Sequence record: LR756502.1
Length of the DNA: 64,000 bases
Strand: one strand, 5' to 3'
Positions 224 to 60,414 of the stretch are shown here, in pieces (the first letter of the stretch is position 1; each line of letters opens with the position of its first letter). Made by a program: the position numbers and the translations under genes. The notes under the pieces are model-generated. The model saw only the letters and a program-made list of their open reading frames with translations. It was not told the DNA's origin and did no database searches.

Positions 224-1447
224 TTAGTCGTATCCTCCATCGGTATCTCGAAGTTCTCTATCGTGATCATTATCATAGTCATTTGTTAGTGTATCACTAT
301 CTGTGTCTAAAAGGAAGAATGTATCAAGATATGGATAATATTCAAAATCTGACTTTTTTAACTCAATAGTCTCTGAGGCTGACCTAGAATCTGTGCCATT
401 TTCCATTGTAAAATCATTATCAGAATCTTGGCTTCTTTTCCACCAAAATCCCTCTTTCTTACCAAACTCTTTGAATAAATCAACATCTGAATCTCTTAGA
501 GTATATATTCTGTCCATTATTTTATATCCTCTTGTTGTTGTCCATAGAATACATCTTCCAATTATTTTATCTGATGTGTATTTTCCATTCTCGTCAATTT
601 TTCCTGACTCATCATAAAGAATAACCATTTTACAGGTGTCCTTATTTTTGGTGTATATCTTGAACCATTTTTTAGGACCACCAGCCATACATGAGTTACC
701 TAGAACACCACCTTCTCCAGCGTAATTTTTATTGTTATACCAGTGTGCTATATCATCACCCTCGACTATATCAAATCTTATTAATGCATTTGCCATTAAG
801 TCATAAGTTGCTTTATATAAGTTAACAAACTCCTCAATATCTCTATCTATGAATGGTTCTTTGGCTGATGTTAGAATTGCTCTAACCAATCTACCTATTT
901 TAATATTGTTTCTAGATGTTGACCATATTTGATTGGATACTGAATCGGCTCTCTCTAATGCCTCTTTATTTAGTACAGTTTCCTTATCACTCCATTCTTC
1001 AATTCCCTTAAACCAAACATATATCTTACCGCTTCTTGGACTAACTACCTCTTTAACTATTATACCCATTGTGTCTTCACTTGGTGACCATACATCTGTT
1101 TTTTTCTCATATCCAAGTAGTCTGTATATTGGATCATTTCCAGGTGAGTTTGTTAGGTATTTTTCCTCTTCAATAACTTTATATGTCTCTTGACTGTCTT
1201 TTTCTAACTCTTGTACTTTTCTATCAGGTGTAAAAGAAACAGTGTCCTTTTCACTACCAACATCAACGTAGTTGTGTTGTAGTGTAATATCCTTACTATA
1301 TAAATCTATAAGCTTCTTAGCAATTTGATTAGTTTTCATTTTAGATAAAAAGTTAATAAGCTTTTTTGAGTAAACTAATTTGGATTCCAGTAATAGATCA
1401 TATATAACCTTCTCAGAAATATAATCATCGTATTTTTTAATATTCAT
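224..1447 (-). CDS. Hypothetical phage protein (GNSCM / GRCILW / MDRIY / YPYLDTF motifs) with N-terminal leader tag
   Basis: 407-aa ORF; starts MNIKKYDDYISE; TAATATATAC motif upstream. Confidence 0.8.
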   Translation of the reverse strand: MNIKKYDDYISEKVIYDLLLESKLVYSKKLINFLSKMKTNQIAKKLIDLYSKDITLQHNYVDVGSEKDTVSFTPDRKVQELEKDSQETYKVIEEEKYLTNSPGNDPIYRLLGYEKKTDVWSPSEDTMGIIVKEVVSPRSGKIYVWFKGIEEWSDKETVLNKEALERADSVSNQIWSTSRNNIKIGRLVRAILTSAKEPFIDRDIEEFVNLYKATYDLMANALIRFDIVEGDDIAHWYNNKNYAGEGGVLGNSCMAGGPKKWFKIYTKNKDTCKMVILYDESGKIDENGKYTSDKIIGRCILWTTTRGYKIMDRIYTLRDSDVDLFKEFGKKEGFWWKRSQDSDNDFTMENGTDSRSASETIELKKSDFEYYPYLDTFFLLDTDSDTLTNDYDNDHDRELRDTDGGYD

Positions 1448-1468
1448 AAAAGATTATTTTTTATTAGA

Positions 1469-1478
1469 GTATATATTA
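1469..1478 (-). promoter_or_regulatory. TAATATATA putative phage late-promoter motif
   Basis: TAATATATAC 22 nt upstream of the 1447 start; motif recurs upstream of many genes. Confidence 0.55.
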
Positions 1479-1535
1479 TTTATCTAATTTCAAAAGATAA
1501 AATAAAAGACAATTTTATTTTATTATATATATTTT

Positions 1536-1772
1536 ATGAAGAAAAAAGTAGCACAGATAATAAAAATATTAGGAATTGGTATAAATGAGTTGATAATTGA
1601 TATCGAACTCGATACTATAACAGTAAATTCTATTGAGTGGTCACCATCCGATAAAAAGATATATTTACATATTTTCAATGATGATATGGATATAGAGTTG
1701 GACTTTGATGATCTTTCTGATATTAATCAAGAAATTATATACAAAAATCTATCACAAATAACTTACAACTAG
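1536..1772 (+). CDS. Hypothetical protein
   Basis: 78-aa acidic ORF filling the gap, AT-rich leader. Confidence 0.6.
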   Translation: MKKKVAQIIKILGIGINELIIDIELDTITVNSIEWSPSDKKIYLHIFNDDMDIELDFDDLSDINQEIIYKNLSQITYN

Positions 1773-3918: not shown

Positions 3919-4335
3919 CTAATTTAGTTTATATAGATAAACATTTTTATAATCAGGATCATAGTCTGTTATCTCGAACCCCATTGACTTGTATAGGTTG
4001 TTTGCTACTTCATTTTCTGGATCACAATGTAGGTATATATTTGAGTATTGTTTTTTACCTTTATCAAATGATATTCCATCTTCTAATCTTTTTATTATAG
4101 TAGATAATGCTTTTTTTGAATATCCTTGTCCTCTAAAATCTTTGTATATTTTGAATGAATATATCCATATATCCCCATCATCTGGACTAAGTCCAATTCT
4201 ACCAATCTTCTCATCTCCTATATAAATAGGATATATATACCCTCCCAATTTACTCCTACTCTCTGGTGTGTATGATTCATATTCATTTGGAATGAAAACA
4301 TCATTAGTTTCTTTATATGTCTTTATGTGCTTCAT
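3919..4335 (-). CDS. GNAT-family acetyltransferase with N-terminal leader tag
   Basis: Motif A FKIYKDFRGQGYSKKAL and motif B NEVANNLYKSMGFE; starts MKHIKTYKE. Confidence 0.85.
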   Translation of the reverse strand: MKHIKTYKETNDVFIPNEYESYTPESRSKLGGYIYPIYIGDEKIGRIGLSPDDGDIWIYSFKIYKDFRGQGYSKKALSTIIKRLEDGISFDKGKKQYSNIYLHCDPENEVANNLYKSMGFEITDYDPDYKNVYLYKLN

Positions 4336-4347: not shown

Positions 4348-4902
4348 CTATTCAGTTTCTATTGAAAACTCTTCACCCTCTTCTTCGAATTGATCATCAA
4401 GCTCAATTTTAAGGTTTATTAGAAATTCCTCATTTATGTCTTTGATTTTAACATTTTTTGTTATTTGTCCAATCACCTCAAATGTATCTAAGTTATACTT
4501 CTTGAACTTAATATAACACTTCTCAATATCATCAGTTGAGAAGTCCTTATCTGGTTCTTTAGGAATAGCTTCCTTTAATTCAATCATTATATAAAGATTA
4601 TATGTTGCTTCATCATCAGAAAACTTAACATTTAAGTTATCGTACTGCTTTGAGTATTTGGATATTTCAGAGCTTTCGATTCTAACTCCTAAGTCCTTAA
4701 AGGTCATTGACTTTTCTTTGCTATCTGATTTAGCATCCTTGATTGACTTACCTTCTTCAGATTCTTGTTCTTTCTCACCTTCTTGGTATTCAAACATATT
4801 ATCTATCTTCTTCTTAATTTGTCTAAGAGCAGTTTCTATGTATGTCTCTGGTGTATCATTGAACTCCTCATTGATAAACTCTGTAAATTTTCTAATCTTC
4901 AT
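4348..4902 (-). CDS. Acidic hypothetical protein with N-terminal leader tag
   Basis: 184 aa; starts MKIRKFTEFINEE; TAATATATAC at 4907-4916. Confidence 0.75.
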   Translation of the reverse strand: MKIRKFTEFINEEFNDTPETYIETALRQIKKKIDNMFEYQEGEKEQESEEGKSIKDAKSDSKEKSMTFKDLGVRIESSEISKYSKQYDNLNVKFSDDEATYNLYIMIELKEAIPKEPDKDFSTDDIEKCYIKFKKYNLDTFEVIGQITKNVKIKDINEEFLINLKIELDDQFEEEGEEFSIETE

Positions 4903-4950
4903 AATTGTATATATTAATTTTTCTATTTATATTTACAATGTTTGATAGAT

Positions 4951-5379: not shown

Positions 5380-5883
5380 TTATATATTTTTTTTATCTGT
5401 GTCCAGAATAGAATTAATTTTATTATCTCTCTCCTCAAATTTCTCTGTTATATCGGCATATTTTATTGTATAATATGGGTTTAGTGATACTAAATCAACA
5501 TACCTTATTATATAAAATATAACAAATTTTTTCCAAGATCCTTTTTCGAAGAATGCATCCAACTCATCATCTGTATCTAATTTAATAAGCTTTGCAGTAT
5601 ATGACTTCTCAACTATATTGTTATCCTCTACTTTAATTATTGTGAATGATGGTGATGCACATACATATGATATTTTTCTCCAGTGTTTATCCAATACATC
5701 ACCCATCCATATCGATGGATTTACTGATGCTGTGTGTGTATTTGTATTATCATGACACATTCTTAATGAATTATCATATAATATTTTTATTCCTTCTAAG
5801 TTATATTCAGATATTGGGTATATACTTATTTTTTTTGGATCTAATGTCGAATTAACATTACTACTAATTAGTTCTCTAAACAT
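5380..5883 (-). CDS. Hypothetical protein with C-terminal RxxKIxxIL tag
   Basis: Ends FEERDNKINSILDTDKKNI. Confidence 0.7.
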   Translation of the reverse strand: MFRELISSNVNSTLDPKKISIYPISEYNLEGIKILYDNSLRMCHDNTNTHTASVNPSIWMGDVLDKHWRKISYVCASPSFTIIKVEDNNIVEKSYTAKLIKLDTDDELDAFFEKGSWKKFVIFYIIRYVDLVSLNPYYTIKYADITEKFEERDNKINSILDTDKKNI

Positions 5884-6047
5884 ATAAGAATTTTTTTTAT
5901 TTTATTACTTCTAAAAACATTTCGGTTACCAAATATTTTATTGCTTACAAATATATGGTCAGCTGATGCACGCCCTGATGATGATATTATATTAGATGCT
6001 TTTAATATTTTAGAGGCTAGATCTCTTTGAATTTTGGAATTATCCAT
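5868..6047 (-). CDS. Small ORF missed by the track (59 aa) with RxxKIxxIL tag
   Basis: Manual translation MDNSKIQRDLASKILKASNIISSSGRASADHIFVSNKIFGNRNVFRSNKIKKILICLEN*; overlaps both neighbours. Confidence 0.65.
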   Translation of the reverse strand: MDNSKIQRDLASKILKASNIISSSGRASADHIFVSNKIFGNRNVFRSNKIKKILICLEN

Positions 6048-7875: not shown

Positions 7876-8310
7876 TTATAGTAATACTTTATCTATCTTT
7901 TTGTCTCTGAACTTCTGTGGGTCTGTAATATAATACTCCCATTTATCTAAATCTTTTATGAACTCTTCTCCAAATAGGTCTAATATATCCTCATCTGGTA
8001 TCTTATATCCGAAATTATATTTCTTTTCTATTGGAATGAAACTACCATTCGACAGTTTATATTCAATCTCACAATTTGCTGGATTAAAATATTGACCAAT
8101 AACTTCTATCCTTTGATATCCATCTATTTTTGAATTTATTTCAAATATCCTGTCTATTATGGTATTTTGGTCTTCTAAATCACTTGTATACCATTCACAA
8201 TATAAACATATTAATTCAACAATATAGGAATTTTTTATTCCAGTTTTAGTTTCAATGATTGGTCTCCATTTTTTTATTGGTCTTTCATCTGTTCTATCTA
8301 CTCTTCTCAT
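7876..8310 (-). CDS. Hypothetical protein with C-terminal tag
   Basis: Ends QKFRDKKIDKVLL. Confidence 0.7.
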   Translation of the reverse strand: MRRVDRTDERPIKKWRPIIETKTGIKNSYIVELICLYCEWYTSDLEDQNTIIDRIFEINSKIDGYQRIEVIGQYFNPANCEIEYKLSNGSFIPIEKKYNFGYKIPDEDILDLFGEEFIKDLDKWEYYITDPQKFRDKKIDKVLL

Positions 8311-9287: not shown

Positions 9288-9314
9288 ATTATACTATAAT
9301 GTGAAGATAAGTTT
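9288..9314 (-). promoter_or_regulatory. AAACTT-N15-TATAAT candidate promoter
   Basis: Same arrangement and spacing at 9711-9737 upstream of the preceding gene. Confidence 0.35.
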
Positions 9315-9705
9315 ATAGTATTGAGTCAATCTTTCTTTCTCTTTCCCATGATACTAAAACAGTATTTAGGTACTTTTCTATTTCTCTTGGGAAATTAACG
9401 TTCTGCTTTTTTACCTCATCATAGAATGCTTTTCCTTGTAGGTTTATCATTGATACGTATAGTGCGGTCATTATATCTTTATATCCATCAACCTCTATAT
9501 CTTTACCGAGTACGTTATATGTTGTCTTTACTGATGCAATTGATAAGTGGTTATTTGTTACTGTAGTTACTGTGGTTGCCATCATGTTCGCTATGGTGTT
9601 GGTAGCAGTAGAACCATACACAATTGATGATTGTGTCAATGTAGATATTGTGAGTGTGCTTGATGTGCTAGATGTTGCGAAGTTCATTCCGATATTTAAA
9701 TTCAT
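9313..9705 (-). CDS. Hypothetical protein, Ser/Thr-rich N-terminus, C-terminal tag
   Basis: Ends SWERERKIDSIL. Confidence 0.7.
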   Translation of the reverse strand: MNLNIGMNFATSSTSSTLTISTLTQSSIVYGSTATNTIANMMATTVTTVTNNHLSIASVKTTYNVLGKDIEVDGYKDIMTALYVSMINLQGKAFYDEVKKQNVNFPREIEKYLNTVLVSWERERKIDSIL

Positions 9706-9738
9706 ATTGGATTATATTAAATATTGGAAATAAGTTTA

Positions 9739-11316
9739 TTACTTAACAAGTAAGTGAGGTGCTGACCATGTTGACTCTGACTTTGCGAAACTAACAATCT
9801 TTGATATTACTTTATTTGCTTCAATTTGTGGCATACTCTCTAACCATTCTAGAATAATTATAGATTGCATTCTTGAATTTTGGTCGGGAGTTTTTATTGT
9901 ACCAGTACTTATATCATCATAGAATATTTCTTGTAGATCTCTATCTTTGAACCTAAATCTCTCCTTATCAAGTAATTCAGCTATTTCCTCTTTATCTGTT
10001 GATGTTCTTATAAATTCCTTTATCTTAAAAAACTTTGGACCCATTATCGATTCTAAAATAGATCCAGCTTTACCACTCATGTGCTTTGCCTTTTTAGAAC
10101 CTTTTACTTCTAGTGATACTGATGAGTTGGTTGTTCTATCAAATGTCCTGCATTGAATCTCACTTCCACCAAAGAACTTTGATTTTTTACCAAATTTATA
10201 GGAGAAGTTTATTGTAACCGTTTTCTTATCATTGCTCATTTCATATCCATCATATTTGTGTATTGCTTTTTTAGGGTCAGCATTTACTATTGATAGGCTA
10301 CCAACATTTGATCCTTGTTTTAGTGATACTCCAATCAATCCTTTGTTATTTAATATAGAATCCATCAAGAATGAGTTCAAATCATCTATATCCGAGTTAC
10401 TTTCATACTCCTCCTCTTCGATATCGCCTAAACTCTCATATTTATCAAAGTCCTCCATGGTCCACTCATATCCATCAAATATTATCCATATATCACTTGG
10501 ATTCCACTTAGCTAGTGATAGTCTAGTTGGTAGGTCAATAATACCATAGTCATCATCAACTGGTATAGTTGCAAACTTACCGGTGCCTTTCGCTGTTGAC
10601 TCATCTTTTAGATATGTTGCTGCTACTTGATTTATTAATAAGTCTGTTGTGTTTTTTATAACATATGATACATTCTTAATGTCTTCGCCAAGATACGCTA
10701 TTAGCTTTCTACATTGGTCTCTCATAGCATTAACTGCTTGTATATTTTCACTCATAAAAGTATCATACTCATGTCTAAAGGCTCCTCTCTCATCATCCGA
10801 GATTTGAGATGTTCCGTCATTATTATATGCCATTTTTATAAAACCTCTATTTGATGATATCCTTAACTCAACCCTTTTTTCCGCCCACGCTTCAATTGCT
10901 AGTGTAATTATAAATGCTGTTTCTCTGAAGTGCTCACCTCTTTTGGCTGCTCCTACTTTATCTAACTGCCTAATCATTGTAGTTCTACTCCCTTTTTTAG
11001 CAACTGCCCAAGGAAATAATTTAGATGACGTTTGGTATATCATTAGCTCATCTATTAATGATCCACTGATTCCTAATTTTGACTTTAGTTCCGAGAATTT
11101 TATCTTTTGGATTGATGATGGTTTTAACCATAATACCTCTGTGTTTGCTGATGGTCTTTTTCTAGAATATGATAGAGTCATATCTTCTGTAATTCCAAAC
11201 CTATCGATGGCTAGTCTTCCATTTCTCGATAATATATAATTGATTCCTTCTTTAGTGCTATCTAATGTAGCCTCATTGACTTGTTGAAATCCTAAAAAAT
11301 TTGAAATAAATCTCAT
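9739..11316 (-). CDS. Putative PD-(D/E)xK-fold nuclease-like phage protein with N-terminal leader
   Basis: KWNPSDIWII...LIGVSLKQ motif pair; starts MRFISNFLGFQQVNE; TAATATATAG at 11321-11330. Confidence 0.55.
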   Translation of the reverse strand: MRFISNFLGFQQVNEATLDSTKEGINYILSRNGRLAIDRFGITEDMTLSYSRKRPSANTEVLWLKPSSIQKIKFSELKSKLGISGSLIDELMIYQTSSKLFPWAVAKKGSRTTMIRQLDKVGAAKRGEHFRETAFIITLAIEAWAEKRVELRISSNRGFIKMAYNNDGTSQISDDERGAFRHEYDTFMSENIQAVNAMRDQCRKLIAYLGEDIKNVSYVIKNTTDLLINQVAATYLKDESTAKGTGKFATIPVDDDYGIIDLPTRLSLAKWNPSDIWIIFDGYEWTMEDFDKYESLGDIEEEEYESNSDIDDLNSFLMDSILNNKGLIGVSLKQGSNVGSLSIVNADPKKAIHKYDGYEMSNDKKTVTINFSYKFGKKSKFFGGSEIQCRTFDRTTNSSVSLEVKGSKKAKHMSGKAGSILESIMGPKFFKIKEFIRTSTDKEEIAELLDKERFRFKDRDLQEIFYDDISTGTIKTPDQNSRMQSIIILEWLESMPQIEANKVISKIVSFAKSESTWSAPHLLVK

Positions 11317-11354
11317 AAGACTATATATTAAATTATATCTACTAATTTATTAAA

Positions 11355-13524: not shown

Positions 13525-14196
13525 TTAATTATTTGGTTTTAATGGTATCTCTGGATTAATCTCAAATTGTTCATTAAGATATTTTCTTAATTCATTCTCT
13601 ATATAATGGTCCGGTACTTCTGTGGATGGATCAATTTCACCCATTTTCTTTGCTAAGTGTAGTGAGAACTTATGTACAATTTCTGGCTTAACTGCTTCTA
13701 TTAGTCTATCTGATACAACAAAAGCTCTTGTGAATCTATCCTTAACTTTTATCTCACCTTCCATAACCTTCATTGTGCTATCTATTATCTTCTTTAGGAA
13801 TGCTGAATAGTCACTACCAGGGTCTGCTAGTATTGGTGCTATTACCTTATTAAATGCTCTCGATGTGCCAAGTATATACCCTAGTATTGCTAGAATAGGA
13901 AAGAATGGGGCAAGTGCTATTGGTATTAATCTGTGTGCCATTTTAACAACTCCGACTTTTAGATCTGCTTTTTTCCTTGCTTCTATAGCATCTAAGAATA
14001 TAGCCTTTAATATACCAAATGTAAACTTTGTTCCTTTCTCTTTAAGATATTCCGCCAAGTGTCCTTTATTAGCTGATATTATATGATTTTTTAATTCATC
14101 TTCATCAGTTATACCAAGCCTTATTAGTTCGGTTTTGATATTACTATCAAATTTCTCTAAAATTAAAAAATGATTATATTTTATTATGTTCTTCAT
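13525..14196 (-). CDS. Hypothetical protein with N-terminal leader and central hydrophobic segment
   Basis: Starts MKNIIKYNHFLILE; hydrophobic LIPIALAPFFPILAILGYILG. Confidence 0.7.
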   Translation of the reverse strand: MKNIIKYNHFLILEKFDSNIKTELIRLGITDEDELKNHIISANKGHLAEYLKEKGTKFTFGILKAIFLDAIEARKKADLKVGVVKMAHRLIPIALAPFFPILAILGYILGTSRAFNKVIAPILADPGSDYSAFLKKIIDSTMKVMEGEIKVKDRFTRAFVVSDRLIEAVKPEIVHKFSLHLAKKMGEIDPSTEVPDHYIENELRKYLNEQFEINPEIPLKPNN

Positions 14197-14239: not shown

Positions 14240-15583
14240 ATGATGATTGAAAAGTCTATATCTGAATTTCTATCGAATGAGTATAAGGAATTCGCAATGT
14301 ATGTTGTTGAAGGTAGAGCAATACCTTCTGTAATTGATGGTTTCAAACCAACTCAGAGAAAAGTAGTTCATGTATCAAACCAGGTTTGGAAGACAGGAAA
14401 TGAAAAATCCCTTAAAGTATTCCAATTGTCTGGTAAGGTTGCTAGTGATTGCTATTATCATCACGGTGATTCTAGTTTGTCAAATGCTATAATAAATATT
14501 GCTCAACGATTTAAGAATAATGCTCCATTACTAGAAGAGATTGGTCAATTTGGATCACTTAGATCTCCACAAGCCAGTGCTCCTCGATATATTGAAACAA
14601 AACTATCTGATAACTTCAGATTACTTTATAAGGATTTTGAATTACTTGATTATAAAGAAGAAGAAGGTGAAGTTATTGAACCTAAATTCTTCCTACCAAT
14701 TATACCAACAGTTTTGATAAATGGTGGGTCCGGTATCGCTGTTGGATTTGCTTCAAATATTTTAAATAGAAATGTTACTGAAATAATAGACTCTTGTGTT
14801 AAAGTTTTAAGTGGTAAAAGAGCAAGTGATGTTAGTCCAAGTCTAAATTCATTCAATGGTACATATACTGTCGATCCAGATAATAGTAAAAGATGGGTTA
14901 TTAGAGGTAAATTTGAAAGAGTAAATACATCAACTGTTAAAATAGTAGAGCTATCACCTTCAATGACATATGAGAAGTATGAAGAGATATTGGATAAACT
15001 TGTTGAGAATAAAGAAATTGTTTCATATGATGATAATTGCAAGGATAACATTGATTATACATTAAAGTTTACTAGAGTTGATTTAGAGGCACTTGATGAT
15101 GATAAGTTATATAAGCTACTTAAGCTTGAAGAGGCACAAACTGAAATATACTCAACACTTGATGAGAGAGGTAAGCTAAAGATATTTGAAGCAACAAGTG
15201 ATATTATTCAATATTTTGTTGACTTTAGACTTACATATTATCACAAGAGGAAAGAGTTTATGCTCGATAAGCTAAACAATGAGTTGAAAATACTTAGTAA
15301 TCGTGGGAGATTTATAAAGGCCATACTTGATGAGAAGATTAAAATAAATAATGTTGCTAAACAACAGATAATTGACCAGATTGAGCAGATTGGTCTAGAG
15401 AAGATTGATGAATCTTATGATTATTTATTAAGAATGCCTATCTACTCATTAACTAAAGAATTATTTGATAAACTGAAGGAGGACTTCTCTGCAAAGAAAG
15501 AAGAGATTCAGAAGTTACAATCAACTGACCCTAAGGATATGTATGTGACTGACTTGTCAGATCTGAAAAAGAAATTCAAATAA
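14240..15583 (+). CDS. Phage type II DNA topoisomerase breakage-reunion subunit (gp52-like)
   Basis: RAIPSVIDGFKPTQRK, YHHGDSSL, catalytic ASAPRYI, PIIPTVLING..GIAVGF, YLLRMPIYSLT. Confidence 0.95.
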   Translation: MMIEKSISEFLSNEYKEFAMYVVEGRAIPSVIDGFKPTQRKVVHVSNQVWKTGNEKSLKVFQLSGKVASDCYYHHGDSSLSNAIINIAQRFKNNAPLLEEIGQFGSLRSPQASAPRYIETKLSDNFRLLYKDFELLDYKEEEGEVIEPKFFLPIIPTVLINGGSGIAVGFASNILNRNVTEIIDSCVKVLSGKRASDVSPSLNSFNGTYTVDPDNSKRWVIRGKFERVNTSTVKIVELSPSMTYEKYEEILDKLVENKEIVSYDDNCKDNIDYTLKFTRVDLEALDDDKLYKLLKLEEAQTEIYSTLDERGKLKIFEATSDIIQYFVDFRLTYYHKRKEFMLDKLNNELKILSNRGRFIKAILDEKIKINNVAKQQIIDQIEQIGLEKIDESYDYLLRMPIYSLTKELFDKLKEDFSAKKEEIQKLQSTDPKDMYVTDLSDLKKKFK

Positions 15584-15891
15584 TGTTTACATTAGTAGAC
15601 CATATATCTCATCGAGATAATCCTTTTGGTTTGATATTTTGGTATGTTATACTAGAAGATGAGAATGGTGATAATTTCTTTGACCATTTCTCCACAGAGG
15701 ACTATGATTCAATTAATCTCAGTGATTCGGTTACTAGAGCAGTTCCAATTGAATTAAGTCACATTGAGTTATATTTTGAAGTTTATTTATCTGGTGATAG
15801 TAAAATGGAAATTAGTCATTACAGAAAAATAGAATCTATAAAGTGTAGATTAGAAAGAGAAAGTAAAATCAATTATATACTGGGACAATGA
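15583..15891 (+). CDS. Hypothetical protein with C-terminal tag
   Basis: Ends RLERESKINYILGQ; coupled via TAATG. Confidence 0.7.
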   Translation: MFTLVDHISHRDNPFGLIFWYVILEDENGDNFFDHFSTEDYDSINLSDSVTRAVPIELSHIELYFEVYLSGDSKMEISHYRKIESIKCRLERESKINYILGQ

Positions 15892-16217
15892 TTAATATTA
15901 AATTTAATGGATGGGAAGTAGTAGCATATTCAAGTGAAGTTGAGCATCACTCAATAAAAGAGATGTTGACAGTTTTTATCTCAAGGGATAATGAATACTA
16001 TTTTATACATGATGAGTTAGATAAAATAAGAGATGTTATTGGTATGCCGAATTATATAAGTGATGATTGGGTAAATTATAACAAGAAGGAGGTAAATGAG
16101 AAGATTTTGGACAAATACATTAAAGAATTCTCCGAAGTTGGGTTAATGGAATCACAATACATTGCATCTGAACTTAAAAGTATTAAAAGAAACCTTATTA
16201 TAAAGAAGATAATATAA
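15888..16217 (+). CDS. Hypothetical protein with variant C-terminal tag
   Basis: Ends SIKRNLIIKKII; ATGA overlap. Confidence 0.7.
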   Translation: MINIKFNGWEVVAYSSEVEHHSIKEMLTVFISRDNEYYFIHDELDKIRDVIGMPNYISDDWVNYNKKEVNEKILDKYIKEFSEVGLMESQYIASELKSIKRNLIIKKII

Positions 16218-16219: not shown

Positions 16220-16251
16220 TTTGTTATAAGTAAATATTTTCCGTATATTTG
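16220..16251 (+). promoter_or_regulatory. Bacteroidota primary-sigma promoter (-33 TTTG, -7 TAnnTTTG)
   Basis: TTTG 16220-16223, 20-nt spacer, TATATTTG 16244-16251. Confidence 0.75.
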
Positions 16252-25446: not shown

Positions 25447-25486
25447 TTCAATAAAATTCCGTATGTTTGTATAAACAATCAGATAT

Positions 25487-43193: not shown

Positions 43194-43634
43194 CTATTTT
43201 TCCCCAAAGTTATTCTCCCTATCTAATTCTACTATTAGTGTGTCCAGCTTAACTCCCTTTAGTTTTTCTAAAATGTTGGCTGATGAGTTGATATAATATG
43301 GTCTTCTCTTTTTAGTTGAAACACCAGAAATACTATATGTTATATGATATTTATATTTTAGATTATTTGAATCACAATATGACTCAAAGCTCTTGAGTGT
43401 ATCAATAATCTCCTCGATAAAAAATCCTTTTAGCCTACCTGGTCCCATCCAAGCAGACATAATGGTTATATTCCACGAAATTACACCGGTATATGCATCT
43501 ATTGAAAACCCATCATCAGATATTGGATAGAGATAGTCTAGTGAATCTATTATAAATTGTGGTAAATCATCCTCTCTTGTAAATGGATGTGGTGTCTCAG
43601 ATTCAAATAGGCTATATGGTTTAAGATGGTTCAT
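43194..43634 (-). CDS. Hypothetical protein with N-terminal leader
   Basis: Starts MNHLKPYSLFES. Confidence 0.65.
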   Translation of the reverse strand: MNHLKPYSLFESETPHPFTREDDLPQFIIDSLDYLYPISDDGFSIDAYTGVISWNITIMSAWMGPGRLKGFFIEEIIDTLKSFESYCDSNNLKYKYHITYSISGVSTKKRRPYYINSSANILEKLKGVKLDTLIVELDRENNFGEK

Positions 43635-45023: not shown

Positions 45024-45043
45024 TTTTAATATATATATTAAAA
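45024..45043. promoter_or_regulatory. Palindromic bidirectional TAATATATA element
   Basis: ttttaatatatatattaaaa perfect palindrome between divergent genes 45006(-) and 45086(+). Confidence 0.6.
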
Positions 45044-45085: not shown

Positions 45086-45715
45086 ATGAAATATCTAAAA
45101 AAATATAAAAAGTATAAAGAGTCCTTAGAGATTGATCTGGCGCTATATAACATTGATTTAATGGAGTCATTAAATCTTTGGCATGATGTAATTCTTAATT
45201 CAATAGGTGCTGAAGAGATGGATATCTATGAAACATTTAAGTTACCAAAAGATCAGTACCAAGGTAGAATGAATATCGACTTTTTATCAAATGATGTTGA
45301 ATTTATTAATTCATTAGCTAGTATTGGATTAAAGAAATCACCTATACAAAGTACAGATGACTATGCTACTTTTATAAATAAACCTTGTAAATTTATGTTT
45401 ATTTATGGGGTTGAGTCAAATGAGTTAGAAAATCCAATGTATATATTGTTTGAGAGTTGGAACGAGACTTTAAGTAAGTGGCAAGATGGTAGACTATATA
45501 AGGTTAATGATGATGTTAAACGATTCTATGATAAATTATCATCAAAAACAATTGAGATAACTGATGGTGATCAGAACTACATATATTCAACTTCTAATGG
45601 TAGTGAATGGGAGCTTCAAAATAATAAGGAAAGTGAAATATACCAAAAGGTATTTAGAAAGGATGAGTTTGAGAAGCTTATAAATGACCGAAAGGCAAAG
45701 CTAAAAATTATTTAA
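45086..45715 (+). CDS. Hypothetical protein with N-terminal leader
   Basis: Starts MKYLKKYKKYKES. Confidence 0.75.
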   Translation: MKYLKKYKKYKESLEIDLALYNIDLMESLNLWHDVILNSIGAEEMDIYETFKLPKDQYQGRMNIDFLSNDVEFINSLASIGLKKSPIQSTDDYATFINKPCKFMFIYGVESNELENPMYILFESWNETLSKWQDGRLYKVNDDVKRFYDKLSSKTIEITDGDQNYIYSTSNGSEWELQNNKESEIYQKVFRKDEFEKLINDRKAKLKII

Positions 45716-48848: not shown

Positions 48849-49472
48849 CTACTTACACTTTATAACAAAAGCTGCCTTTCTTGTTAAGAAACCAAAATTT
48901 GCTTCGAAATATGTATATTTAACACCATCTATCTCAAAAGCATTCTCATCATTCTTATATCCTTTATTTACTAAAATGTAATCAAAGCTTGACCAAAATG
49001 ATGGAACTCTTAATATTCTATAATCACTAGTCTCTTTAACAACTTCTAACTCATTCAGATTAACTTGTTGACCATTTGGTAGGTCATTCTTATTAGTTGT
49101 AGCATAGATATATGATCCCCATGTACTTGTTTTATAGTATATAGTCGATACTCCTTCTTCAACAGTTACCGCGTAGTCACTACTCTTTCCTGCTTGTCTA
49201 TAAGTACCAATTACTCCATCATTTTTATTAATTGATATATTTAGATTAGCATCAAAAAATTGAGCAGTGTGTATATGATATTCTGGGAAGTTAGATAGTT
49301 CTGTCTCTTGATAAGATGCTTTTGATTTACCTGGTGTGGTATCAATTGAATGAATACCAGCAGCTAAGCCTCCTACTAGAGCTCCTCCGATGAGTAATTT
49401 TGCAGGAACAGTAAACTTCTTCATATCTACTTCTTCGTTACAGAAGTCATTATAGTTTTTAATATTCTTCAT
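48849..49472 (-). CDS. Hypothetical protein with N-terminal leader followed by a TM-like segment
   Basis: MKNIKNYNDFCNEE...LLIGGALVGGLAAGI. Confidence 0.7.
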   Translation of the reverse strand: MKNIKNYNDFCNEEVDMKKFTVPAKLLIGGALVGGLAAGIHSIDTTPGKSKASYQETELSNFPEYHIHTAQFFDANLNISINKNDGVIGTYRQAGKSSDYAVTVEEGVSTIYYKTSTWGSYIYATTNKNDLPNGQQVNLNELEVVKETSDYRILRVPSFWSSFDYILVNKGYKNDENAFEIDGVKYTYFEANFGFLTRKAAFVIKCK

Positions 49473-50201: not shown

Positions 50202-50309
50202 GCCTTATTTTATTTATTATATATTTATTAATTAAAGTCGAAATCATATTTTATGTAAAATGTTTAAGTGAAACATAATATTTTATATATACAATAAAAT
50301 AGTATTCAT

Positions 50310-50645: not shown

Positions 50646-52370
50646 ATGAAATTTGTTGAGATAACATATCAAAACATAAAGTTCGAAATTGAGAAGTTCT
50701 TAAAGATAGAGCATAACAAAGCTGGAATACTTTTTAGTCCAGCGAGTCCATATGGTCAGATTCTAACTGTTTTAGAGAATCTACATCAGTTATCATTTTT
50801 ATACTTAAAGAACTCTGTTAGTCAGTTCGATCTAAGTGATCCAAATTCTCTTAATGAAAGAGTAATAAGAAATGCCGCTATTTTCGCTGGTCATATTCCA
50901 GGAAGAGGAATAAGTTCAACTGGTACCTTAAAACTAACATTAAAGACAAATATCGACCTTGATAAAGAAATACCAGGTGGTAGAGTTACATTTTTTAATA
51001 GAACATCATTGAAGAATAAGACAAATTCATTAGAGTATTCAATAAATATAGGTGGTGATAAAGTAACACATAAGATATCACCTAACTTTCAGTTTTTTCT
51101 ACCATTAATACAAGGAAAATGGGGTAGAACAACATTTACCGGCACAGGTGAAATGTTACAAACATTCCAAGTTGCATTGACTGGTCAAAAGGATGTTGAG
51201 AACTTTAATGTTGAAGTATTGGTGAATGGTAGCTTTTGGTCAATTAAAAAGCATATCTATGAATTACTTCCAGATGAACAATCTTGTATTGTGAGAACTG
51301 GATTTAATGGTGGTATTGATATAATATTTGGTAACAATGGGTTTGGATCCATACCTCCAATTGGTGCGATCATAGAGGTTAATTATATAATAACCGATGG
51401 CTCTTTTGGTAATATCTTTAGAAGAACACCAAATGATTGGACATTCATAACAGATGCTATCGATGGTTTTGGTAATACTTTGGATGCATCGAAAGTATTT
51501 AATATAGAAATATACACTGATATAAATTTTGGTGCTGATAAAGAGAGTCTTCAATTTACAAAGAACATACTACCTATTGCTAGTAATAACTTTGTTTTGG
51601 GACTACCTCAACAATACGCATATGAAATAAAAAAACTTGGTGTTTTCTCACACGTCAATGCTTATGAGAAATTTGGTACTATATTTATAGTCGCTACTCC
51701 AAATATAAAGCTATTCAAGAATCAAAATGCTGACTACTTTACTATTGATATAAGAGCATTTGAGCTTGATGACTATGAGAAATCAAAAATAGATAAGTAT
51801 CTAAGAACTGGTGGTAATATACAACTAACTAGAAAGTATAAAATAAGCTCTCCTGTACTATCCTATTATATTATAAACGTATTTATAATGACATATTCTG
51901 ATGCGTCTGATGACTCGGTTAATGCTCAGATATTGGACAAGATATCAGAATATTTTCTTAATTTCAGTAGAATAGATAGAGTTCCTAAAGTTGATATAAT
52001 TAAGGAAATTGCTTCCATAACAGACATACACTCTGTTGATATACAATTTATATGCAAAAATAATGAGGACTATCATAGAGCTAATAAATTAAATGCAGAA
52101 AACAAACAAAATAAATATGCATCTAAATTCAACACCGATATATCTACTCCTAAAGTTGACCCAACTTATAACCAAAATCAAACAAATGGGTTAGATCCAG
52201 TGCTTGGTGATATTATATTTGAATCAAGTGATATACCTGTTATAAGGGGTGGTTGGTATGATAGAAATAATGTCTATTATTCGGATAATATTGATGATAG
52301 AGGATTAAAGTCTGTTAACATAATTAAGAAGGGTACAATAGATGCAAAAAATAAACCATCAATAAAATAA
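50646..52370 (+). CDS. Baseplate wedge protein, T4 gp6-like
   Basis: ITYQNIKFEIEKFL, GGIDIIFGNNGFGSIPPIGAIIEVNYIITDG, GADKESL..TK. Confidence 0.75.
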   Translation: MKFVEITYQNIKFEIEKFLKIEHNKAGILFSPASPYGQILTVLENLHQLSFLYLKNSVSQFDLSDPNSLNERVIRNAAIFAGHIPGRGISSTGTLKLTLKTNIDLDKEIPGGRVTFFNRTSLKNKTNSLEYSINIGGDKVTHKISPNFQFFLPLIQGKWGRTTFTGTGEMLQTFQVALTGQKDVENFNVEVLVNGSFWSIKKHIYELLPDEQSCIVRTGFNGGIDIIFGNNGFGSIPPIGAIIEVNYIITDGSFGNIFRRTPNDWTFITDAIDGFGNTLDASKVFNIEIYTDINFGADKESLQFTKNILPIASNNFVLGLPQQYAYEIKKLGVFSHVNAYEKFGTIFIVATPNIKLFKNQNADYFTIDIRAFELDDYEKSKIDKYLRTGGNIQLTRKYKISSPVLSYYIINVFIMTYSDASDDSVNAQILDKISEYFLNFSRIDRVPKVDIIKEIASITDIHSVDIQFICKNNEDYHRANKLNAENKQNKYASKFNTDISTPKVDPTYNQNQTNGLDPVLGDIIFESSDIPVIRGGWYDRNNVYYSDNIDDRGLKSVNIIKKGTIDAKNKPSIK

Positions 52371-52624: not shown

Positions 52625-52693
52625 TTTTATTAAAAATAAGAAAACCAAGTAAATTTTTTAATATATAATAAACAAAACTAATAAATATCAAGT

Positions 52694-58400: not shown

Positions 58401-58867
58401 TAGTTTATTATTTTTGATAAATCCGCTGCTGAGTATTTTACTGACTTTAGAATCTTATCATCACCATTTCTGTATACGATATACTTACCATTCAATTCTT
58501 TGTAATACCCTTCTGTGCCATCTTTCTTCTTGTAGTGAGATAGAGTTTCAATTGCCTCTTGTATGGATGAACATGCCTTACTCATGTTACTTCTTTGTAC
58601 CTCATCGAATAATTCTATGAATTTATCACCAAATCCGAACTCAAGAACAGCTCCAGACAAGACATATTGTAAGTCACAAAGTGCATCGGATATTTCTACT
58701 AAATCTCCATCTTTTATAGCTTGTGATAATTCATCAAGTTCTTCTTGTAGAAGACTTACCCTTAGTTCACATCTCTGTTCTGATGGTATCTGTGGTTTGT
58801 CAAGTATTGGTGCGTTAAATGTTTTGTGAAATTCAGCTACCTGGTTTAATGCGTCTAATTTTTTCAT
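58400..58867 (-). CDS. MazG-like nucleoside-triphosphate pyrophosphohydrolase
   Basis: EFHKTF...LLQEELDEL...ISDALCDLQYV...EVQRSNMSK. Confidence 0.85.
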   Translation of the reverse strand: MKKLDALNQVAEFHKTFNAPILDKPQIPSEQRCELRVSLLQEELDELSQAIKDGDLVEISDALCDLQYVLSGAVLEFGFGDKFIELFDEVQRSNMSKACSSIQEAIETLSHYKKKDGTEGYYKELNGKYIVYRNGDDKILKSVKYSAADLSKIIN

Positions 58868-58931
58868 AAGAATAATTTTGGTTATTATATGATAAAACTA
58901 ATTTATAGTTCATTAAAATAATATATAGTTT

Positions 58932-60002
58932 ATGAAACATTTGAGAAATTTTGATAAGTTTAAGAAGTCTAATGTTAACGAAGAGCTTCTTGGTGGTCTA
59001 ATGAATTGGTTCAAGAACATGTGGAATAAAGCAGTTAAAGACCTTGAGGGTTTGGAAGATGATCCAAACAAAATAAAGGAATGGGTAATAAATAATGCTT
59101 TGAACCCAAAAGATGATACAAATGTTTTCTCACAAGTACTTAAAGATTTTCAGAAGAAAGATAAAGCAAATGATCAAGACTGCTTAACACTTATTGACAA
59201 CTTACTTGATCCTGAGACTGGTTCACTTGGTAAGCAAGGTATCGGTGTTTTATTATCAAATAAAGCTCTACAAGGTGAGAAGTTAAAGGCTAAGAGAGTA
59301 ATGTTAGAATATATTGTGACTACTGCTAGAAATCAAACAATTGCTAAGATTAAGTTTGCTGGTGGTCCAAAGGATGGTAAGATAGACCCGAAGAAAAAGA
59401 ATATTGATTTGAAAGATACAAATCATCTACCTGATTTAAAGAAGATATTAATTGCTCAGAAAACGGATGAGAAGAAAAAGAAGGACGAGACTATTAAATG
59501 GGTTAATGTAACATTTATACCAATGATTCAGAATTTTGTTAAGGCGATAAAAGAAGATGATATTAGAGCAGCACTCACAAAGCAAGGAATTGAATTATCT
59601 GGTGGTGATTATAAAGAAGGTGATAGTGTTATCTATCTATTAAAAGATAAGACTAAAGAGGAGTGGGATAAGCTAACAGATGATCAGAAAAAGTTAACAG
59701 CTGAAGCCCCTGCAAATACAATAGTTGGAGTACATAAGATAGAGAAGATAGAAGGTGATAATGTTACCCTATTGGATAAGGATGATAAACCAACAATTGT
59801 AAAGACTAAGGAGGATATTATTGGTAAGTCTGAAGTCGAGAAGGGTCCTAATGCTCAAGATTTGGCTAAAAAACTTGGTGATATTAAAACAGATGAGGAT
59901 AAAATGAAGAAAGTATCCAGTTATGTTGACTTCATGAATGATGCCGCAAATAAAGATAAGATCGCCGAGATTGATAAAATAATTGGCGGTGGTGGTGCTT
60001 AG
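58932..60002 (+). CDS. Lys/Asp-rich hypothetical protein with N-terminal leader
   Basis: Starts MKHLRNFDKFKKSNVNEE; TAATATATAG at 58919-58928. Confidence 0.75.
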   Translation: MKHLRNFDKFKKSNVNEELLGGLMNWFKNMWNKAVKDLEGLEDDPNKIKEWVINNALNPKDDTNVFSQVLKDFQKKDKANDQDCLTLIDNLLDPETGSLGKQGIGVLLSNKALQGEKLKAKRVMLEYIVTTARNQTIAKIKFAGGPKDGKIDPKKKNIDLKDTNHLPDLKKILIAQKTDEKKKKDETIKWVNVTFIPMIQNFVKAIKEDDIRAALTKQGIELSGGDYKEGDSVIYLLKDKTKEEWDKLTDDQKKLTAEAPANTIVGVHKIEKIEGDNVTLLDKDDKPTIVKTKEDIIGKSEVEKGPNAQDLAKKLGDIKTDEDKMKKVSSYVDFMNDAANKDKIAEIDKIIGGGGA

Positions 60003-60414
60003 TAATTTCAAACAATTTAATGAGTCTAATTCAAACTTTATGTCAGAAGATGATGTTAAGGATATATTTATTGATATAATCGATGAGGGGTTTGATGTTG
60101 AGTTCTTCCGTGTGAGGTCAGAGAATGAGTGTGTGTACTCTGGCAAGTACTTTTTTGAGTTTAGAAAAAATCTATCAAACGAATCACTGGGATATATTGA
60201 TGTTGGAGATGTTGATGGATATACTAACCTTAATAACATGAAGTCTCAATTAGATATATTTGATATATTAATCGACATAAAAACCAGAGTAAACTCACTT
60301 GGATATACAATATCTTTTGGATATGAATCATCATTAACATCAACCTCCGATAACCAAGTGATTTTAATTTGCAATATGCAACATTCGAAACTTGATTCAG
60401 ACTCTCTTGATTAA
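59995..60414 (+). CDS. Hypothetical protein with N-terminal leader
   Basis: Probable GTG start: MLSNFKQFNES. Confidence 0.65.
   Translation: MLSNFKQFNESNSNFMSEDDVKDIFIDIIDEGFDVEFFRVRSENECVYSGKYFFEFRKNLSNESLGYIDVGDVDGYTNLNNMKSQLDIFDILIDIKTRVNSLGYTISFGYESSLTSTSDNQVILICNMQHSKLDSDSLD

Follow-up and report, generated by a model that had tools for sequence, protein, structure and literature searches.

Phage T4 delivers a handful of internal proteins, IPI, IPII, IPIII and Alt, into its capsid by means of the capsid-targeting sequence (CTS), an N-terminal peptide of 10-19 residues shared by otherwise unrelated proteins. The CTS carries two aromatic residues three positions apart, followed by hydrophobic-x-Glu; T4 IPII and IPIII begin MKTYQEFIAE, and in T4 residues 4 and 7 direct targeting whereas residues 8 and 10 direct processing (PMC9026906). 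In the giant phages phiKZ, 201phi2-1 and SPN3US, head and ejection proteins bear propeptides that are cut at A/S/G-x-E, after Glu, by a T4-related prohead protease; identical N-termini on diverged paralogues have been read as CTS-like, and an ejection protein can have a membrane helix right after its propeptide (PMC5694885). Other short terminal peptides are the cargo-loading peptides of encapsulins, which are C-terminal and address unrelated proteins to one binding site on an HK97-fold shell. Among regulatory elements, the T4 late promoter consists of a single -10-like element, TATAAATA, that depends on gp55, gp33 and the clamp, while Bacteroidetes primary-sigma promoters comprise TTTG at -33 and TAnnTTTG at -7. 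Finally, promoter/stem-loop cassettes (PeSLs) flank variable early genes in T4-like phages (PMC4122927).

Here we examined a 64,000-nucleotide window, positions 496001-560000 of LR756502.1, which belongs to an uncultured 642,428-bp huge phage of the Mahaphage clade. The predicted host phylum, Bacteroidetes, agrees with PMC7162821 and with a phage-encoded SprB/CHU_C protein. A first-pass annotation of the window had proposed that an N-terminal and a C-terminal tag are mutually exclusive and track different promoter classes, and had inferred that late-made proteins are labelled for the capsid and early-made proteins for an intracellular partner. We called 962 genes in the whole genome and scored 956 proteins with iterative HMMs. 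The N-leader (MKHLKxYxxFES) was found at >=10 bits in 167 of 956 proteins, against 4 of 2690 internal-Met control peptides, and the C-tag (RDxKLxxIL/LGI, with an invariant Arg) in 159 of 956, against 7 of 5040 internal control segments, so that control rates were near 0.15%. No protein had both tags at >=10 bits, where 27.8 were expected (Fisher P=3.6e-15), and one borderline case appeared at >=8 bits. The observation thus holds, and it is stronger genome-wide than in the window. About a third of the proteins carry one of the two peptides, which suggests a proteome-wide addressing system not yet described; we found no description of either tag in the literature.

The two tags also split by promoter class. 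The box AATATATA lies within 60 nt upstream of 90/167 leader genes, 0/159 C-tag genes and 112/580 other genes. At the operon level, with classes L (the late-type box), H (Bacteroidetes-type) and A (AAACTT-N15-TATAAT), leader genes divided into L 154, H 2 and none 11, and C-tag genes into L 25, H/A 43 and none 91 (chi-square P=6e-42). When the -7 box alone served as the host-type criterion and the genome was treated as circular, leader genes divided into L 146 versus H 14, and C-tag genes into H/A 122 versus L 16 (P=2e-48). The host-type promoter is less exclusive to C-tag genes than the TAATATATA box is to leader genes, and 16-25 C-tag genes lie downstream of an AATATATA box. C-tag genes lie in long, promoter-poor arrays of small genes headed by Bacteroidetes-type promoters; in the two divergent arrays on either side of a 530-bp non-coding region, 72 of 142 genes carry the tag.

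The AATATATA box has 339 copies, of which 231 fall in the 6.9% of the genome that is intergenic. Like the T4 late promoter, it is one AT-rich element of 8-9 bp without a -35-like partner, oriented and positioned relative to start codons and placed just upstream of structural genes: it precedes the portal (Portal_T4, 1e-57), capsid (Gp23, 4e-28), protease (phrog_207, 6e-28) and sheath genes, although the Pfam S77 match of the protease is below the curated cut-off. Unlike in T4, the sequence is TAATATATA, it often lies only 0-9 nt from the ATG, and it would be read by an as yet unidentified factor; TATAAATA itself shows no such pattern in this genome. As the head and tail genes use the TAATATATA class, 'late' is a reasonable label for it, albeit one inferred from promoter motifs only. 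Both Bacteroidetes-type elements occur with 17-23-nt spacing at 16220, 23396 and 29148 of the window, there are 44 intergenic sites genome-wide, and their use by host polymerase early in infection is likewise inferred.

Within the window, all motif coordinates of the first-pass annotation were confirmed within 1 nt. TAATATATA boxes lie on the minus strand at 1470-1478, 4908-4916, 11322-11330 (before gene 9739-11316), 32690-32698 and 34545-34553, and on the plus strand at 52659-52667 and 58919-58927. A palindromic TAATATATATATTA-type box at 45027-45040, between divergent genes, reads as TAATATATA on both strands (45027/45032). An AAATATATA box lies at 50218-50226 (-), and TTATATATA-type variants at about 14226 and 46408. 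Class H promoters, TTTG-N20-TATATTTG, are present on the plus strand at 16220-16251, 23396-23427 and 29148-29179, the first being followed by an AAATATATA box at 16255. Promoter-like sites of class A lie on the minus strand at 9288-9314 and 9711-9737, and all 13 genomic copies of this motif are intergenic. The operons at 16268 and 23805 carry both a host-type promoter and an AATATATA box, so their class is ambiguous.

On the minus strand, N-leaders occupy 1409-1447 of gene 224-1447 (MNIKKYDDYISEK; 12.1 bits, with TAATATATA 22 nt upstream); 4297-4335 of gene 3919-4335 (MKHIKTYKETNDV; 15.7 bits), a GNAT acetyltransferase whose Pfam domain starts at residue 27 and whose gene is one gene downstream of the box at 4908; 14158-14196 of gene 13525-14196 (MKNIIKYNHFLIL; 13.6 bits, with a TTATATATA variant in the divergent spacer); 32029-32067 of gene 31657-32067 (MKHLNKFNESNED; 21.0 bits, one gene downstream of the box at 32690); 34484-34522 of gene 33986-34522 (MEVKRYNQFINEA; 12.9 bits, with the box at 34545 lying 22 nt upstream); 43596-43634 of gene 43194-43634 (MNHLKPYSLFESE; 20.8 bits); and 49434-49472 of gene 48849-49472 (MKNIKNYNDFCNEE; 23.9 bits), which is followed by a hydrophobic segment and lies one gene downstream of the box at 50218. 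On the plus strand they occupy 45086-45124 of gene 45086-45715 (MKYLKKYKKYKES; 16.7 bits, behind the palindromic box) and 58932-58970 of gene 58932-60002 (MKHLRNFDKFKKS..NVNEE; 16.1 bits, with the box at 58919 4 nt upstream). Two further starts are borderline. The leader at 4864-4902 (-) of gene 4348-4902 (MKIRKFTEFINEE; 8.8 bits), with the box 5 nt upstream, is in the T4-like register and has the same F-x-E-F-I-x-E core as T4 IPII/IPIII, whereas the leader-like start at 59983-60027 (+) of gene 59983-60414 (..SNFKQFNES; 9.8 bits), a member of the DDG-domain family, has an uncertain start codon. Several leaders that the first-pass annotation probably counted, at 9739, 13282, 32075, 35708 and 52694, score only 2-3 bits and are below threshold.

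C-tags on the minus strand lie at 5404-5430 (RDNKINSIL, gene 5380-5883, 18 bits), 5886-5912 (RSNKIKKIL, gene 5868-6047, 14 bits), 7882-7908 (RDKKIDKVL, gene 7876-8310, 16 bits) and 9316-9342 (RERKIDSIL, gene 9313-9705, 16 bits, behind the class A promoter-like site at 9711). On the plus strand they lie at 17358-17384 (RNIKLKQIL, gene 17079-17390, 15 bits), at 27459-27485 (RNDKLSKIL, gene 27012-27494, 14 bits) and at 30052-30078 (REDKLNKIL, gene 29482-30084, 14 bits, behind the host-type promoter at 29148); the latter two proteins have an N-terminal membrane helix. Weaker tags of 9 bits each are found at 15856-15882 (RESKINYIL, gene 15583-15891) and 16188-16214 (RNLIIKKII, gene 15888-16217), both plus strand. 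The tag at 35400-35426 (-) (RNKVIDSIL, gene 35394-35705, 15 bits) is an exception to the promoter rule, being two genes behind an AAATATATA box at 37159.

Both tags are conserved as amino acids and not as DNA. The invariant Arg uses six codons in genome-wide proportions, L/I and Y/F interchange at conserved positions, and Lys at leader position 5 is AAA 61 / AAG 41, exactly as expected. With the tags trimmed, there were 149 BLAST families among the 167 leader proteins and 155 among the 159 C-tag proteins. Pfam folds among leader proteins are unrelated to one another, and the Rnl1-like protein has about 21 extra N-terminal residues relative to T4 Rnl1. The tags persist in orthologues and are predicted as detached helices: leader residues 1-20 have pLDDT below 50, while the predicted C-tag helix of gene 5380-5883 has pLDDT about 55 although R152, D153 and K155 are invariant in 42 orthologues, and this tag is kept in 88/94 orthologues. 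Both tags occur in the relatives LR745206 and LR756504.

The capsid reading of the leader gains independent support from its resemblance to the T4 CTS, and the phage also has T4-type portal, capsid and prohead-protease genes, the counterparts of gp20, gp23 and gp21. In 37 Rnl1 orthologues, Y7 and F10 are >=90% conserved and E13 is invariant, with the same spacings as in T4, and 113 of 120 orthologues keep Y-x-x-F-[ILV]-x-E. Hydrophobic-x-Glu occurs within residues 7-18 in 82% of leader proteins against 29% of others. Leader proteins are poor in membrane segments (3% against 12%), and leader genes flank the T4-type head module at genome positions 222007 and 231351. There are, however, differences. 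The leader occurs on at least 167 proteins and has 2-3 extra residues after Met-Lys; the majority form (MKHLKxYKIFES) matches the T4 register only loosely, only about 26 of 199 leaders having the exact register and most reading Y-K-[I/L]-F-E or Y-N-E, with Ser following in the shorter forms Y-K-I-F-E-S and Y-N-E-S. T4 internal proteins score only 5-8.6 bits against the leader HMM, below our 10-bit threshold. The mature parts of leader proteins are acidic (median pI 5.1), whereas T4 internal proteins are described as basic, and a few leaders are followed by signal-peptide-like or lipobox-like segments. Compared with the giant-phage propeptides, which are mostly longer than 100 residues and are not one shared motif, the residue before x-Glu is hydrophobic or aromatic instead of small. 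Only about 8 of about 50 SPN3US head proteins are processed, and packaging some 170 different cargo proteins would far exceed those roughly 50 head proteins.

The interpretation given in the first-pass annotation is therefore partly supported. With moderate confidence, we consider the leader, M-K-[H/Y]-[L/I]-K-x-[Y/F]-x-x-F-E-S with a subset reading [Y/F]-x-x-F-[I/L/V]-x-E, to be most likely an expanded version of the T4 CTS. In this view it is a detachable N-terminal helix on late-made, mostly soluble proteins that would bind the scaffolding core of the T4-type prohead and be cut off by a gp21-type prohead protease after the Glu of a hydrophobic-x-Glu site. The tagged proteins, which include lysozyme, an Rnl1-type RNA ligase, NUDIX, SET, GNAT, methyltransferase and HNH enzymes, a 46-member paralogous family and many orphans, would then be packaged and ejected with the DNA. 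The C-tag, [I/L/V]-R-[D/N/E]-x-K-[L/I]-x-x-[I/L]-[L/G], ending in ..LGI or ..IL plus 0-9 further residues, is most likely a docking helix through which small early proteins of unrelated sequence bind one common partner, phage or host. No such partner was identified and a fold search of a C-tag protein returned nothing; an intracellular partner is thus only the generic reading, and recruitment to a takeover hub, localisation and timed degradation cannot be told apart on present evidence. Whereas the existence of both tags, their exclusivity, their link to promoter classes, peptide-level selection and modularity are established by our analysis, expression timing, packaging, cleavage and the partner are inferences from sequence.

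Alternatively, the tags might be inherited gene ends, either conserved termini of lineage-specific families expanded by tandem duplication, or cassette ends that help new genes recombine into late or early arrays, as proposed for PeSLs. Exclusion and the promoter link would then simply reflect two separate expansion histories. Indeed, 46 proteins, 41 of them leader-tagged (about a quarter of leader proteins), share a 62-residue domain right after the leader; same-class genes are adjacent far more often than by chance (N-N 74 against 28.6, C-C 65 against 26); and C-tag proteins show, by eye, recurring N-terminal types such as M.FKVGD.. and M..VCI.D... PeSLs resemble the tags as conserved short elements at the borders of many unrelated small genes in variable arrays, and cassette-mediated shuffling is described in T4-like phages (PMC4122927). 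We nevertheless regard this alternative as unlikely. The tags sit on unrelated folds (lysozyme, Rnl1, NUDIX, SET, GNAT and HNH for the leader, riboflavin kinase and BtpA for the C-tag), and the leader is an add-on relative to T4 Rnl1. PeSLs are non-coding, whereas synonymous sites of the tags vary as in the rest of the genome, so there is no DNA-level cassette. Moreover, 46% of leader genes have no box of their own, and the key tag residues are invariant across orthologues of 47-87% identity while neighbouring positions drift.

More doubtful still is the possibility that the leader is an expression device, the late box abutting the start codon of nearly leaderless mRNAs whose first dozen codons or nascent peptide are selected to allow initiation or early elongation. 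Among leader genes with their own box, 80% have it 0-9 nt from the ATG, against 42% of other genes (P=8e-8), and A-ending codons are enriched at some leader positions. Yet 76 of 167 leader genes sit inside operons without a box of their own, conserved positions are defined by residue class (Y/F, L/I, E) with synonymous codon variation, and the portal, protease, capsid and sheath genes use the same box without the leader. The C-tag is likewise not a coupling signal, for 59 of 159 C-tag genes are not tightly followed by another gene and 314 of 414 tightly coupled upstream genes lack it.

That the addresses are reversed or different altogether, with the C-tag, a terminal, conserved helix predicted to be detached, serving as the capsid cargo signal by analogy with encapsulins and the leader serving another late function such as assembly-site targeting or protection from proteolysis, is very unlikely, since the C-tag belongs to the gene class that is not co-regulated with the capsid gene, none of the 159 C-tag genes lying directly behind the box used by the head genes and C-tag genes being concentrated in the promoter-poor arrays of small genes with host-type promoters, since the tag can be followed by up to 9 residues here and about 25 in some orthologues, and since it is the leader, not the C-tag, that matches the T4 targeting pattern.

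The window occupies positions 496001-560000 of the 642,428-bp genome LR756502.1, an unannotated record of an uncultured phage known only from metagenomes. The survey of huge phages lists a manually curated, circular 642-kb genome among its four largest and places all of these in the Mahaphage clade with predicted Bacteroidetes hosts (PMC7162821). The window itself encodes, at 18378-23390 on the plus strand, a 1670-residue Bacteroidetes gliding-adhesin-like exported protein with a signal peptide, 13 SprB repeats, a PKD domain and a CHU_C type-IX-secretion signal, which fits the predicted host phylum. The first-pass annotation had proposed a contingency test of tag class against upstream motif over the full genome. 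We therefore retrieved the complete sequence and called 962 genes with a simple self-trained caller that covers 93% of the genome. Although this caller is home-made, start-codon errors will mostly cause leaders to be missed rather than invented.

Position-specific residue enrichment over all proteins revealed both terminal tags without any prior model. At the N-terminus we found M-K-H-L-K-K-[Y/F]-N-x-F-E, with His enriched 5.7-fold at position 3, and ten residues from the C-terminus Arg was enriched 3.6-fold. At a threshold of 10 bits, iterative HMMs detected the N-leader in 167 of 956 proteins, against 4 of 2690 control peptides starting at internal Met, and the C-tag in 159 of 956 proteins, against 7 of 5040 internal segments. 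A further 32 and 24 proteins, respectively, scored 5-10 bits. The consensus sequences are MKHLKKYKEFESE for the leader and (I)RDxKLNxIL(G/I/K) for the C-tag, in which the Arg is present in all 159 aligned copies. Of the genes in the window, here named by their first coordinate, nine have a strong leader (224, 3919, 13525, 31657, 33986, 43194, 45086, 48849 and 58932) and two are borderline (4348 and 59983), whereas eight have a strong C-tag (5380, 5868, 7876, 9313, 17079, 27012, 29482 and 35394) and two a weaker one (15583 and 15888). Some N-termini that look similar by eye (9739, 13282, 32075, 35708 and 52694) scored only 1-3 bits.

No protein carries both tags at 10 bits or more, where independence predicts 27.8 (Fisher P=3.6e-15), and lowering the threshold to 8 bits yielded one marginal case. 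Genes of the same class also cluster along the genome, with 74 N-N neighbours observed against 28.6 expected, 65 C-C neighbours against 26, and only 20 N-C neighbours against 55.

The octamer AATATATA occurs 339 times, 231 of them in the 6.9% of the genome that is intergenic. The sites are oriented towards the next gene and end either 0-9 nt or 15-29 nt before its ATG. A logo of 217 sites showed only T-T-AATATATA to be conserved, so there is no -35-like partner. In this respect, and in lying upstream of structural genes, the box resembles the T4-type late promoter, a single AT-rich -10-like element. Its sequence, however, is TAATATATA rather than the T4 consensus TATAAATA, which has 277 copies in this genome, only 57 of them intergenic, with no class bias. 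T4-type late promoters are read by a gp55-like sigma factor with gp33 and the sliding clamp. As a mere lead in that direction, only two proteins in the genome end in [L/F]DFLF[D/S], a 1469-residue protein with no Pfam or PHROG match (window 38749-43158, minus strand) and a 133-residue protein (phrog_1401; genome 267443-267844), and these endings could be clamp-binding tails of the T4 type.

The box lies within 60 nt upstream of 90/167 leader genes, 0/159 C-tag genes and 112/580 other genes. Walking up each same-strand run to the first recognisable promoter assigned the leader genes to the AATATATA class (L) in 154 cases, to host-type promoters in 2 and to none in 11. In contrast, the C-tag genes were assigned to L in 25 cases, to host-type promoters in 37, to AAACTT-type sites in 6 and to none in 91, and the other genes to L in 274, host-type in 118, AAACTT-type in 23 and none in 165 (chi-square P=6e-42). 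Many of the heads without a promoter have a good TATATTTG -7 box but no exact TTTG at -33. When we repeated the count with the -7 box alone as the criterion for the host-type class (H) and with the genome treated as circular, leader genes split L 146 against H 14, and C-tag genes split host-type or AAACTT-type (H/A) 122 against L 16 (P=2e-48). Counting each transcription unit once gave the same picture, as L-headed units hold leader genes only in 102 cases and C-tag genes only in 9, whereas H-headed units hold C-tag genes only in 52 cases and leader genes only in 9. Because the relaxed criterion admits chance matches, the strict and relaxed counts should be read together.

The motif positions that the first-pass annotation had assigned within the window proved correct to within one base. 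Two of the 'host-type' operons, at 16268 and 23805, also have an AATATATA box just upstream, and their class is therefore ambiguous. Sites of the host type, with TTTG and TAnnTTTG in the expected arrangement, number 99, of which 44 are intergenic and three lie in the window. AAACTT-N14-17-TATAAT is a third promoter-like class, represented in the window at 9288-9314 and 9711-9737 on the minus strand. All 13 copies in the genome are intergenic, lying before a helicase-like gene, a thioredoxin-like gene and others, and they possibly form a 'middle' class.

The labels 'late' and 'early' are reasonable but rest on promoter motifs and gene layout alone. The AATATATA box precedes the portal gene (Portal_T4, 1e-57; genome 222545-224260), a gene for a 699-residue head maturation protease (phrog_207, 6e-28; 225272-227371), the major capsid gene (Gp23 family, 4e-28; 227452-229167), and the operon containing the tail sheath gene (phrog_34521, 4e-92), which lies two genes behind the box. 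The protease matched Peptidase_S77 only at 5e-4, below the curated cut-off. Its protease-like part is at the N-terminus and is followed by a long extension, possibly a protease-scaffold fusion. Between the capsid gene and a second peptidase gene lies a protein with an NFACT RNA-binding domain (229253-229939). The position of the box differs between these genes and the leader genes. Among leader genes that have their own box, it ends 0-9 nt before the ATG in 80%, as at 58919-58931 and 4903-4916 in the window, but for portal, protease and capsid genes it ends 15-30 nt before the ATG, suggesting nearly leaderless mRNAs for the putative cargo class.

The host-type sites match the Bacteroidetes primary-sigma consensus, with TTTG and TAnnTTTG separated by about 19-21 nt, and host polymerase could therefore use them without phage factors. 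C-tag genes are short, with a median of 111 residues, and tightly packed. Seventy-two of them fill two divergent arrays, at 606-642 kb on the minus strand and at 0.3-21 kb on the plus strand, a layout that is typical of early regions. The arrays lie either side of a 530-bp non-coding region at the junction of the circular record (642193..294). This region holds four TTGTTC(A) repeats where 0.2 are expected and is a candidate early control region or replication origin. The C-tag has two endings, of which '..LGI' is concentrated in the two large arrays (33 of 43 copies), whereas '..IL' followed by 0-9 residues occurs everywhere.

To determine whether the tags act as peptide or as DNA signals, we examined codon usage at their conserved positions and found that synonymous codons vary as they do genome-wide. 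The invariant Arg is encoded by AGA 111, AGG 33, CGT 10, CGA 2, CGC 2 and CGG 1 (P=0.18 against expectation), Lys at leader position 5 is AAA 61 / AAG 41, exactly as expected, and conservation is by residue class (L/I, Y/F). Some excess of A-ending codons near gene ends may be a weak overlay from neighbouring initiation regions. The leader is not an extension of the promoter, since 76 leader genes have no box of their own, and on the same codon and context tests we rejected a recombination cassette. Nor is the C-tag a translational-coupling signal, since 59 of 159 C-tag genes are not tightly followed by another gene and 314 of 414 tightly coupled upstream genes lack the tag.

Both tags are modular. 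With the tags trimmed, leader proteins fall into 149 BLAST families and C-tag proteins into 155. Unrelated Pfam domains among 150 leader proteins include phage lysozyme, T4 RNA ligase 1, NUDIX, SAM methyltransferase, SET, HNH, GNAT, PQ-loop and Toprim, and among 150 C-tag proteins there are riboflavin kinase, BtpA, DUF6011, DUF2158 and a TFIIB zinc ribbon. Neither a motif search nor a scan of 10 proteins located the riboflavin-kinase C-tag protein itself. The Rnl1-like leader protein aligns from its residue 28 to residue 7 of T4 Rnl1 and therefore carries about 21 extra N-terminal residues. A Pfam search with 20 tagged window proteins gave a GNAT match plus two hits below cut-off, HC2 and DUF5755, and a PHROGs search with 10 further proteins, nine of them from the window and including four strong-leader proteins and one sub-threshold leader candidate, added a baseplate wedge subunit and two families of unknown function.

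Modularity is not complete, however. A 62-residue domain (DIL.DL.DDGF.V) directly follows the leader position in a paralogous family of 46 proteins, 41 of them leader-tagged, encoded at 10-45 kb and scattered through the genome. Window gene 59983-60414 is among the 46 HMM hits, whereas gene 43194-43634 is not and only shows a similar ..ISDDGF.. motif by eye. The family evolves fast, and a search of 5.8 billion proteins with the product of gene 43194-43634 detected only 3 relatives, too few for an alignment. C-tag proteins also show a few recurring N-terminal types by eye.

Both tags occur in related phages. A 50-kb piece of LR745206, whose topoisomerase is 79% identical, holds 8 leaders and 19 C-tags, and a piece of LR756504 (44% identical) holds 4 and 1. 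We saw no tags in the first 50 kb of Lak-B1, but as our caller covered only 74% of that stretch the result is uninformative. The Rnl1-like protein has more than 1400 relatives in public metagenomes, on contigs up to 631 kb. In 37 aligned orthologues of 69-87% identity, leader residues Y7 and F10 are at least 90% conserved and E13 is invariant, and 113 of 120 orthologues keep Y-x-x-F-[I/L/V]-x-E. For the C-tag protein 5380-5883, 88 of 94 orthologues keep the tag, and E150, R152, D153 and K155 are invariant in 42 aligned sequences. In 16 orthologue pairs the identity of tag and body was similar (0.52/0.55 for the leader, 0.48/0.45 for the C-tag), and conservation is therefore of the pattern, not of every residue.

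In the predicted structure of the C-tag protein 5380-5883 the mean pLDDT is 83, and above 90 through most of residues 20-145, but the tag lies in a terminal helix (148-164) whose pLDDT falls to 55 and then 46. High conservation without predicted packing is what a docking peptide looks like. A fold search of this confident model against the PDB found no match better than E=0.14, with TM about 0.12. In the Rnl1-like protein, residues 1-20 have pLDDT below 50 and include a short predicted helix at residues 7-15, and the confident core starts after that.

The leader most likely corresponds to the capsid-targeting sequence (CTS) of T4. T4 IPII and IPIII begin MKTYQEFIAE and IPI begins MKTFKEFTST (GenBank AF158101). 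According to a review of the T4 work, these 10-19-residue propeptides target proteins into the prohead core, residues 4 and 7 matter for targeting and residues 8 and 10 for processing, and the peptide is thought to let T4-like phages package varied proteins (PMC9026906). The two best-conserved positions of our leader are aromatics three residues apart. In the T4-like register they are followed by [I/L/V]-x-Glu, as in window gene 4348 (MKIRKFTEFINEE) and in the Rnl1 family, but only about 26 of 199 leaders have the exact T4 register, most use a shorter one, and the T4 internal proteins score only 5-8.6 bits against the leader HMM, below threshold. We therefore claim a shared pattern, not membership by sequence score. 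Taken together, 82% of leaders contain hydrophobic-x-Glu within residues 7-18, against 29% of other proteins, the commonest tripeptides being IFE, FNE, LFE, YNE and INE, most often followed by Ser.

Other observations fit this reading. The phage has the T4-type head gene set, and its portal, protease, capsid and sheath proteins lack the leader, just as the T4 shell proteins lack the IP-type CTS. Leader genes flank the head module at 222007 and 231351, and leader proteins are mostly soluble, with 3% having a membrane-like segment. The capsid protein has an 88-residue extension before its Gp23 domain that contains AEYAEFHQINE-43, and the portal has GINE-55. Both resemble the hydrophobic-N-E site of the leader and are suggestive as protease cleavage sites, but no more. 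We therefore read the leader as a capsid-targeting propeptide that would be removed after Glu. Besides the register and the HMM scores, what speaks against the capsid reading is that the presumed cargo is acidic and that about 170 cargo species would be unprecedented. A few leaders also precede signal-peptide-like or lipobox-like segments, although an ejection protein with a membrane helix after its propeptide does have a precedent in SPN3US.

For the C-tag we can propose only a generic mechanism, in which a short amphipathic helix with an invariant Arg, exposed at the end of many unrelated small proteins inferred to be early, would bind one common site on a partner that might be a host hub, a phage scaffold or a protease adaptor. 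Some specific models are ruled out. The tag is not an ssrA-type degron, which ends at the free C-terminus, because 0-9 variable residues follow the motif here and up to about 25 in orthologues, some orthologues of window gene 5380-5883 ending in DDADDLFL. This excludes only that type of degron, not regulated degradation in general. An encapsulin-type C-terminal cargo peptide, whose carriers should be co-regulated with the shell protein, is not supported, as no C-tag gene lies directly behind the box used by the capsid gene.

The observation that two mutually exclusive terminal tags follow different promoter classes is thus confirmed across the genome. The accompanying proposal, that late-made proteins are labelled for the capsid and early-made proteins for an intracellular partner, is supported only in part. 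Our analysis establishes the existence of both tags, their mutual exclusion, their association with promoter classes, their nature as peptide-level signals and their modularity, whereas expression timing, packaging, cleavage and binding of the C-tag to a partner are inferred from sequence. Full-text literature searches for capsid targeting in huge, mega or jumbo phages, and for the motif strings, found no description of either tag and no link between capsid targeting and huge phages. The leader would be a greatly expanded version of a known kind of signal, while the C-tag, and the pairing of the two tags with presumed temporal promoter classes, have no described counterpart that we could find.

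It is possible, though doubtful on present evidence, that huge phages of this clade run a proteome-wide, two-channel peptide addressing system. In one channel, a CTS-like leader would load some 170-200 different late proteins into the capsid, the largest known arsenal of co-injected enzymes and counter-defence proteins. In the other, the invariant-Arg C-terminal helix would plug some 160-180 unrelated early proteins into a single hub, such as a takeover complex, a compartment or a protease adaptor, letting the phage control a whole temporal class of proteins at once.

Most genes of huge phages have no recognisable function. A terminal tag that sorts about 35% of the proteome into two classes gives every one of those orphan genes a first, testable label, either as packaged and ejected cargo or as an early protein that binds a shared hub. 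If the leader works like the T4 CTS, it would show that this mechanism predates the split between T4 and the largest known phages and that it can scale by two orders of magnitude, and the leader would then offer a ready handle for loading foreign proteins into capsids. Identifying the partner of the C-tag could reveal how a 642-kb phage coordinates host takeover. Both tags are simple sequence markers that can be searched for in the many related metagenomic contigs of 385-631 kb.

The window also contains genes of other kinds. A collagen-repeat protein of 738 residues (61500-63716, minus strand) and a baseplate wedge subunit homologue (50646-52370, plus strand) show that tail genes are interspersed in it. 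At 23947-27007 on the plus strand, the window has a SpoVR-like protein and a membrane protein with a glutamate-synthase domain, and elsewhere in the genome (273831-277142) there is a 641-residue phrog_22605 protein next to a 'sporulation protein' homologue. Together they resemble a PrkA/YeaH/SpoVR-type set split over two sites.
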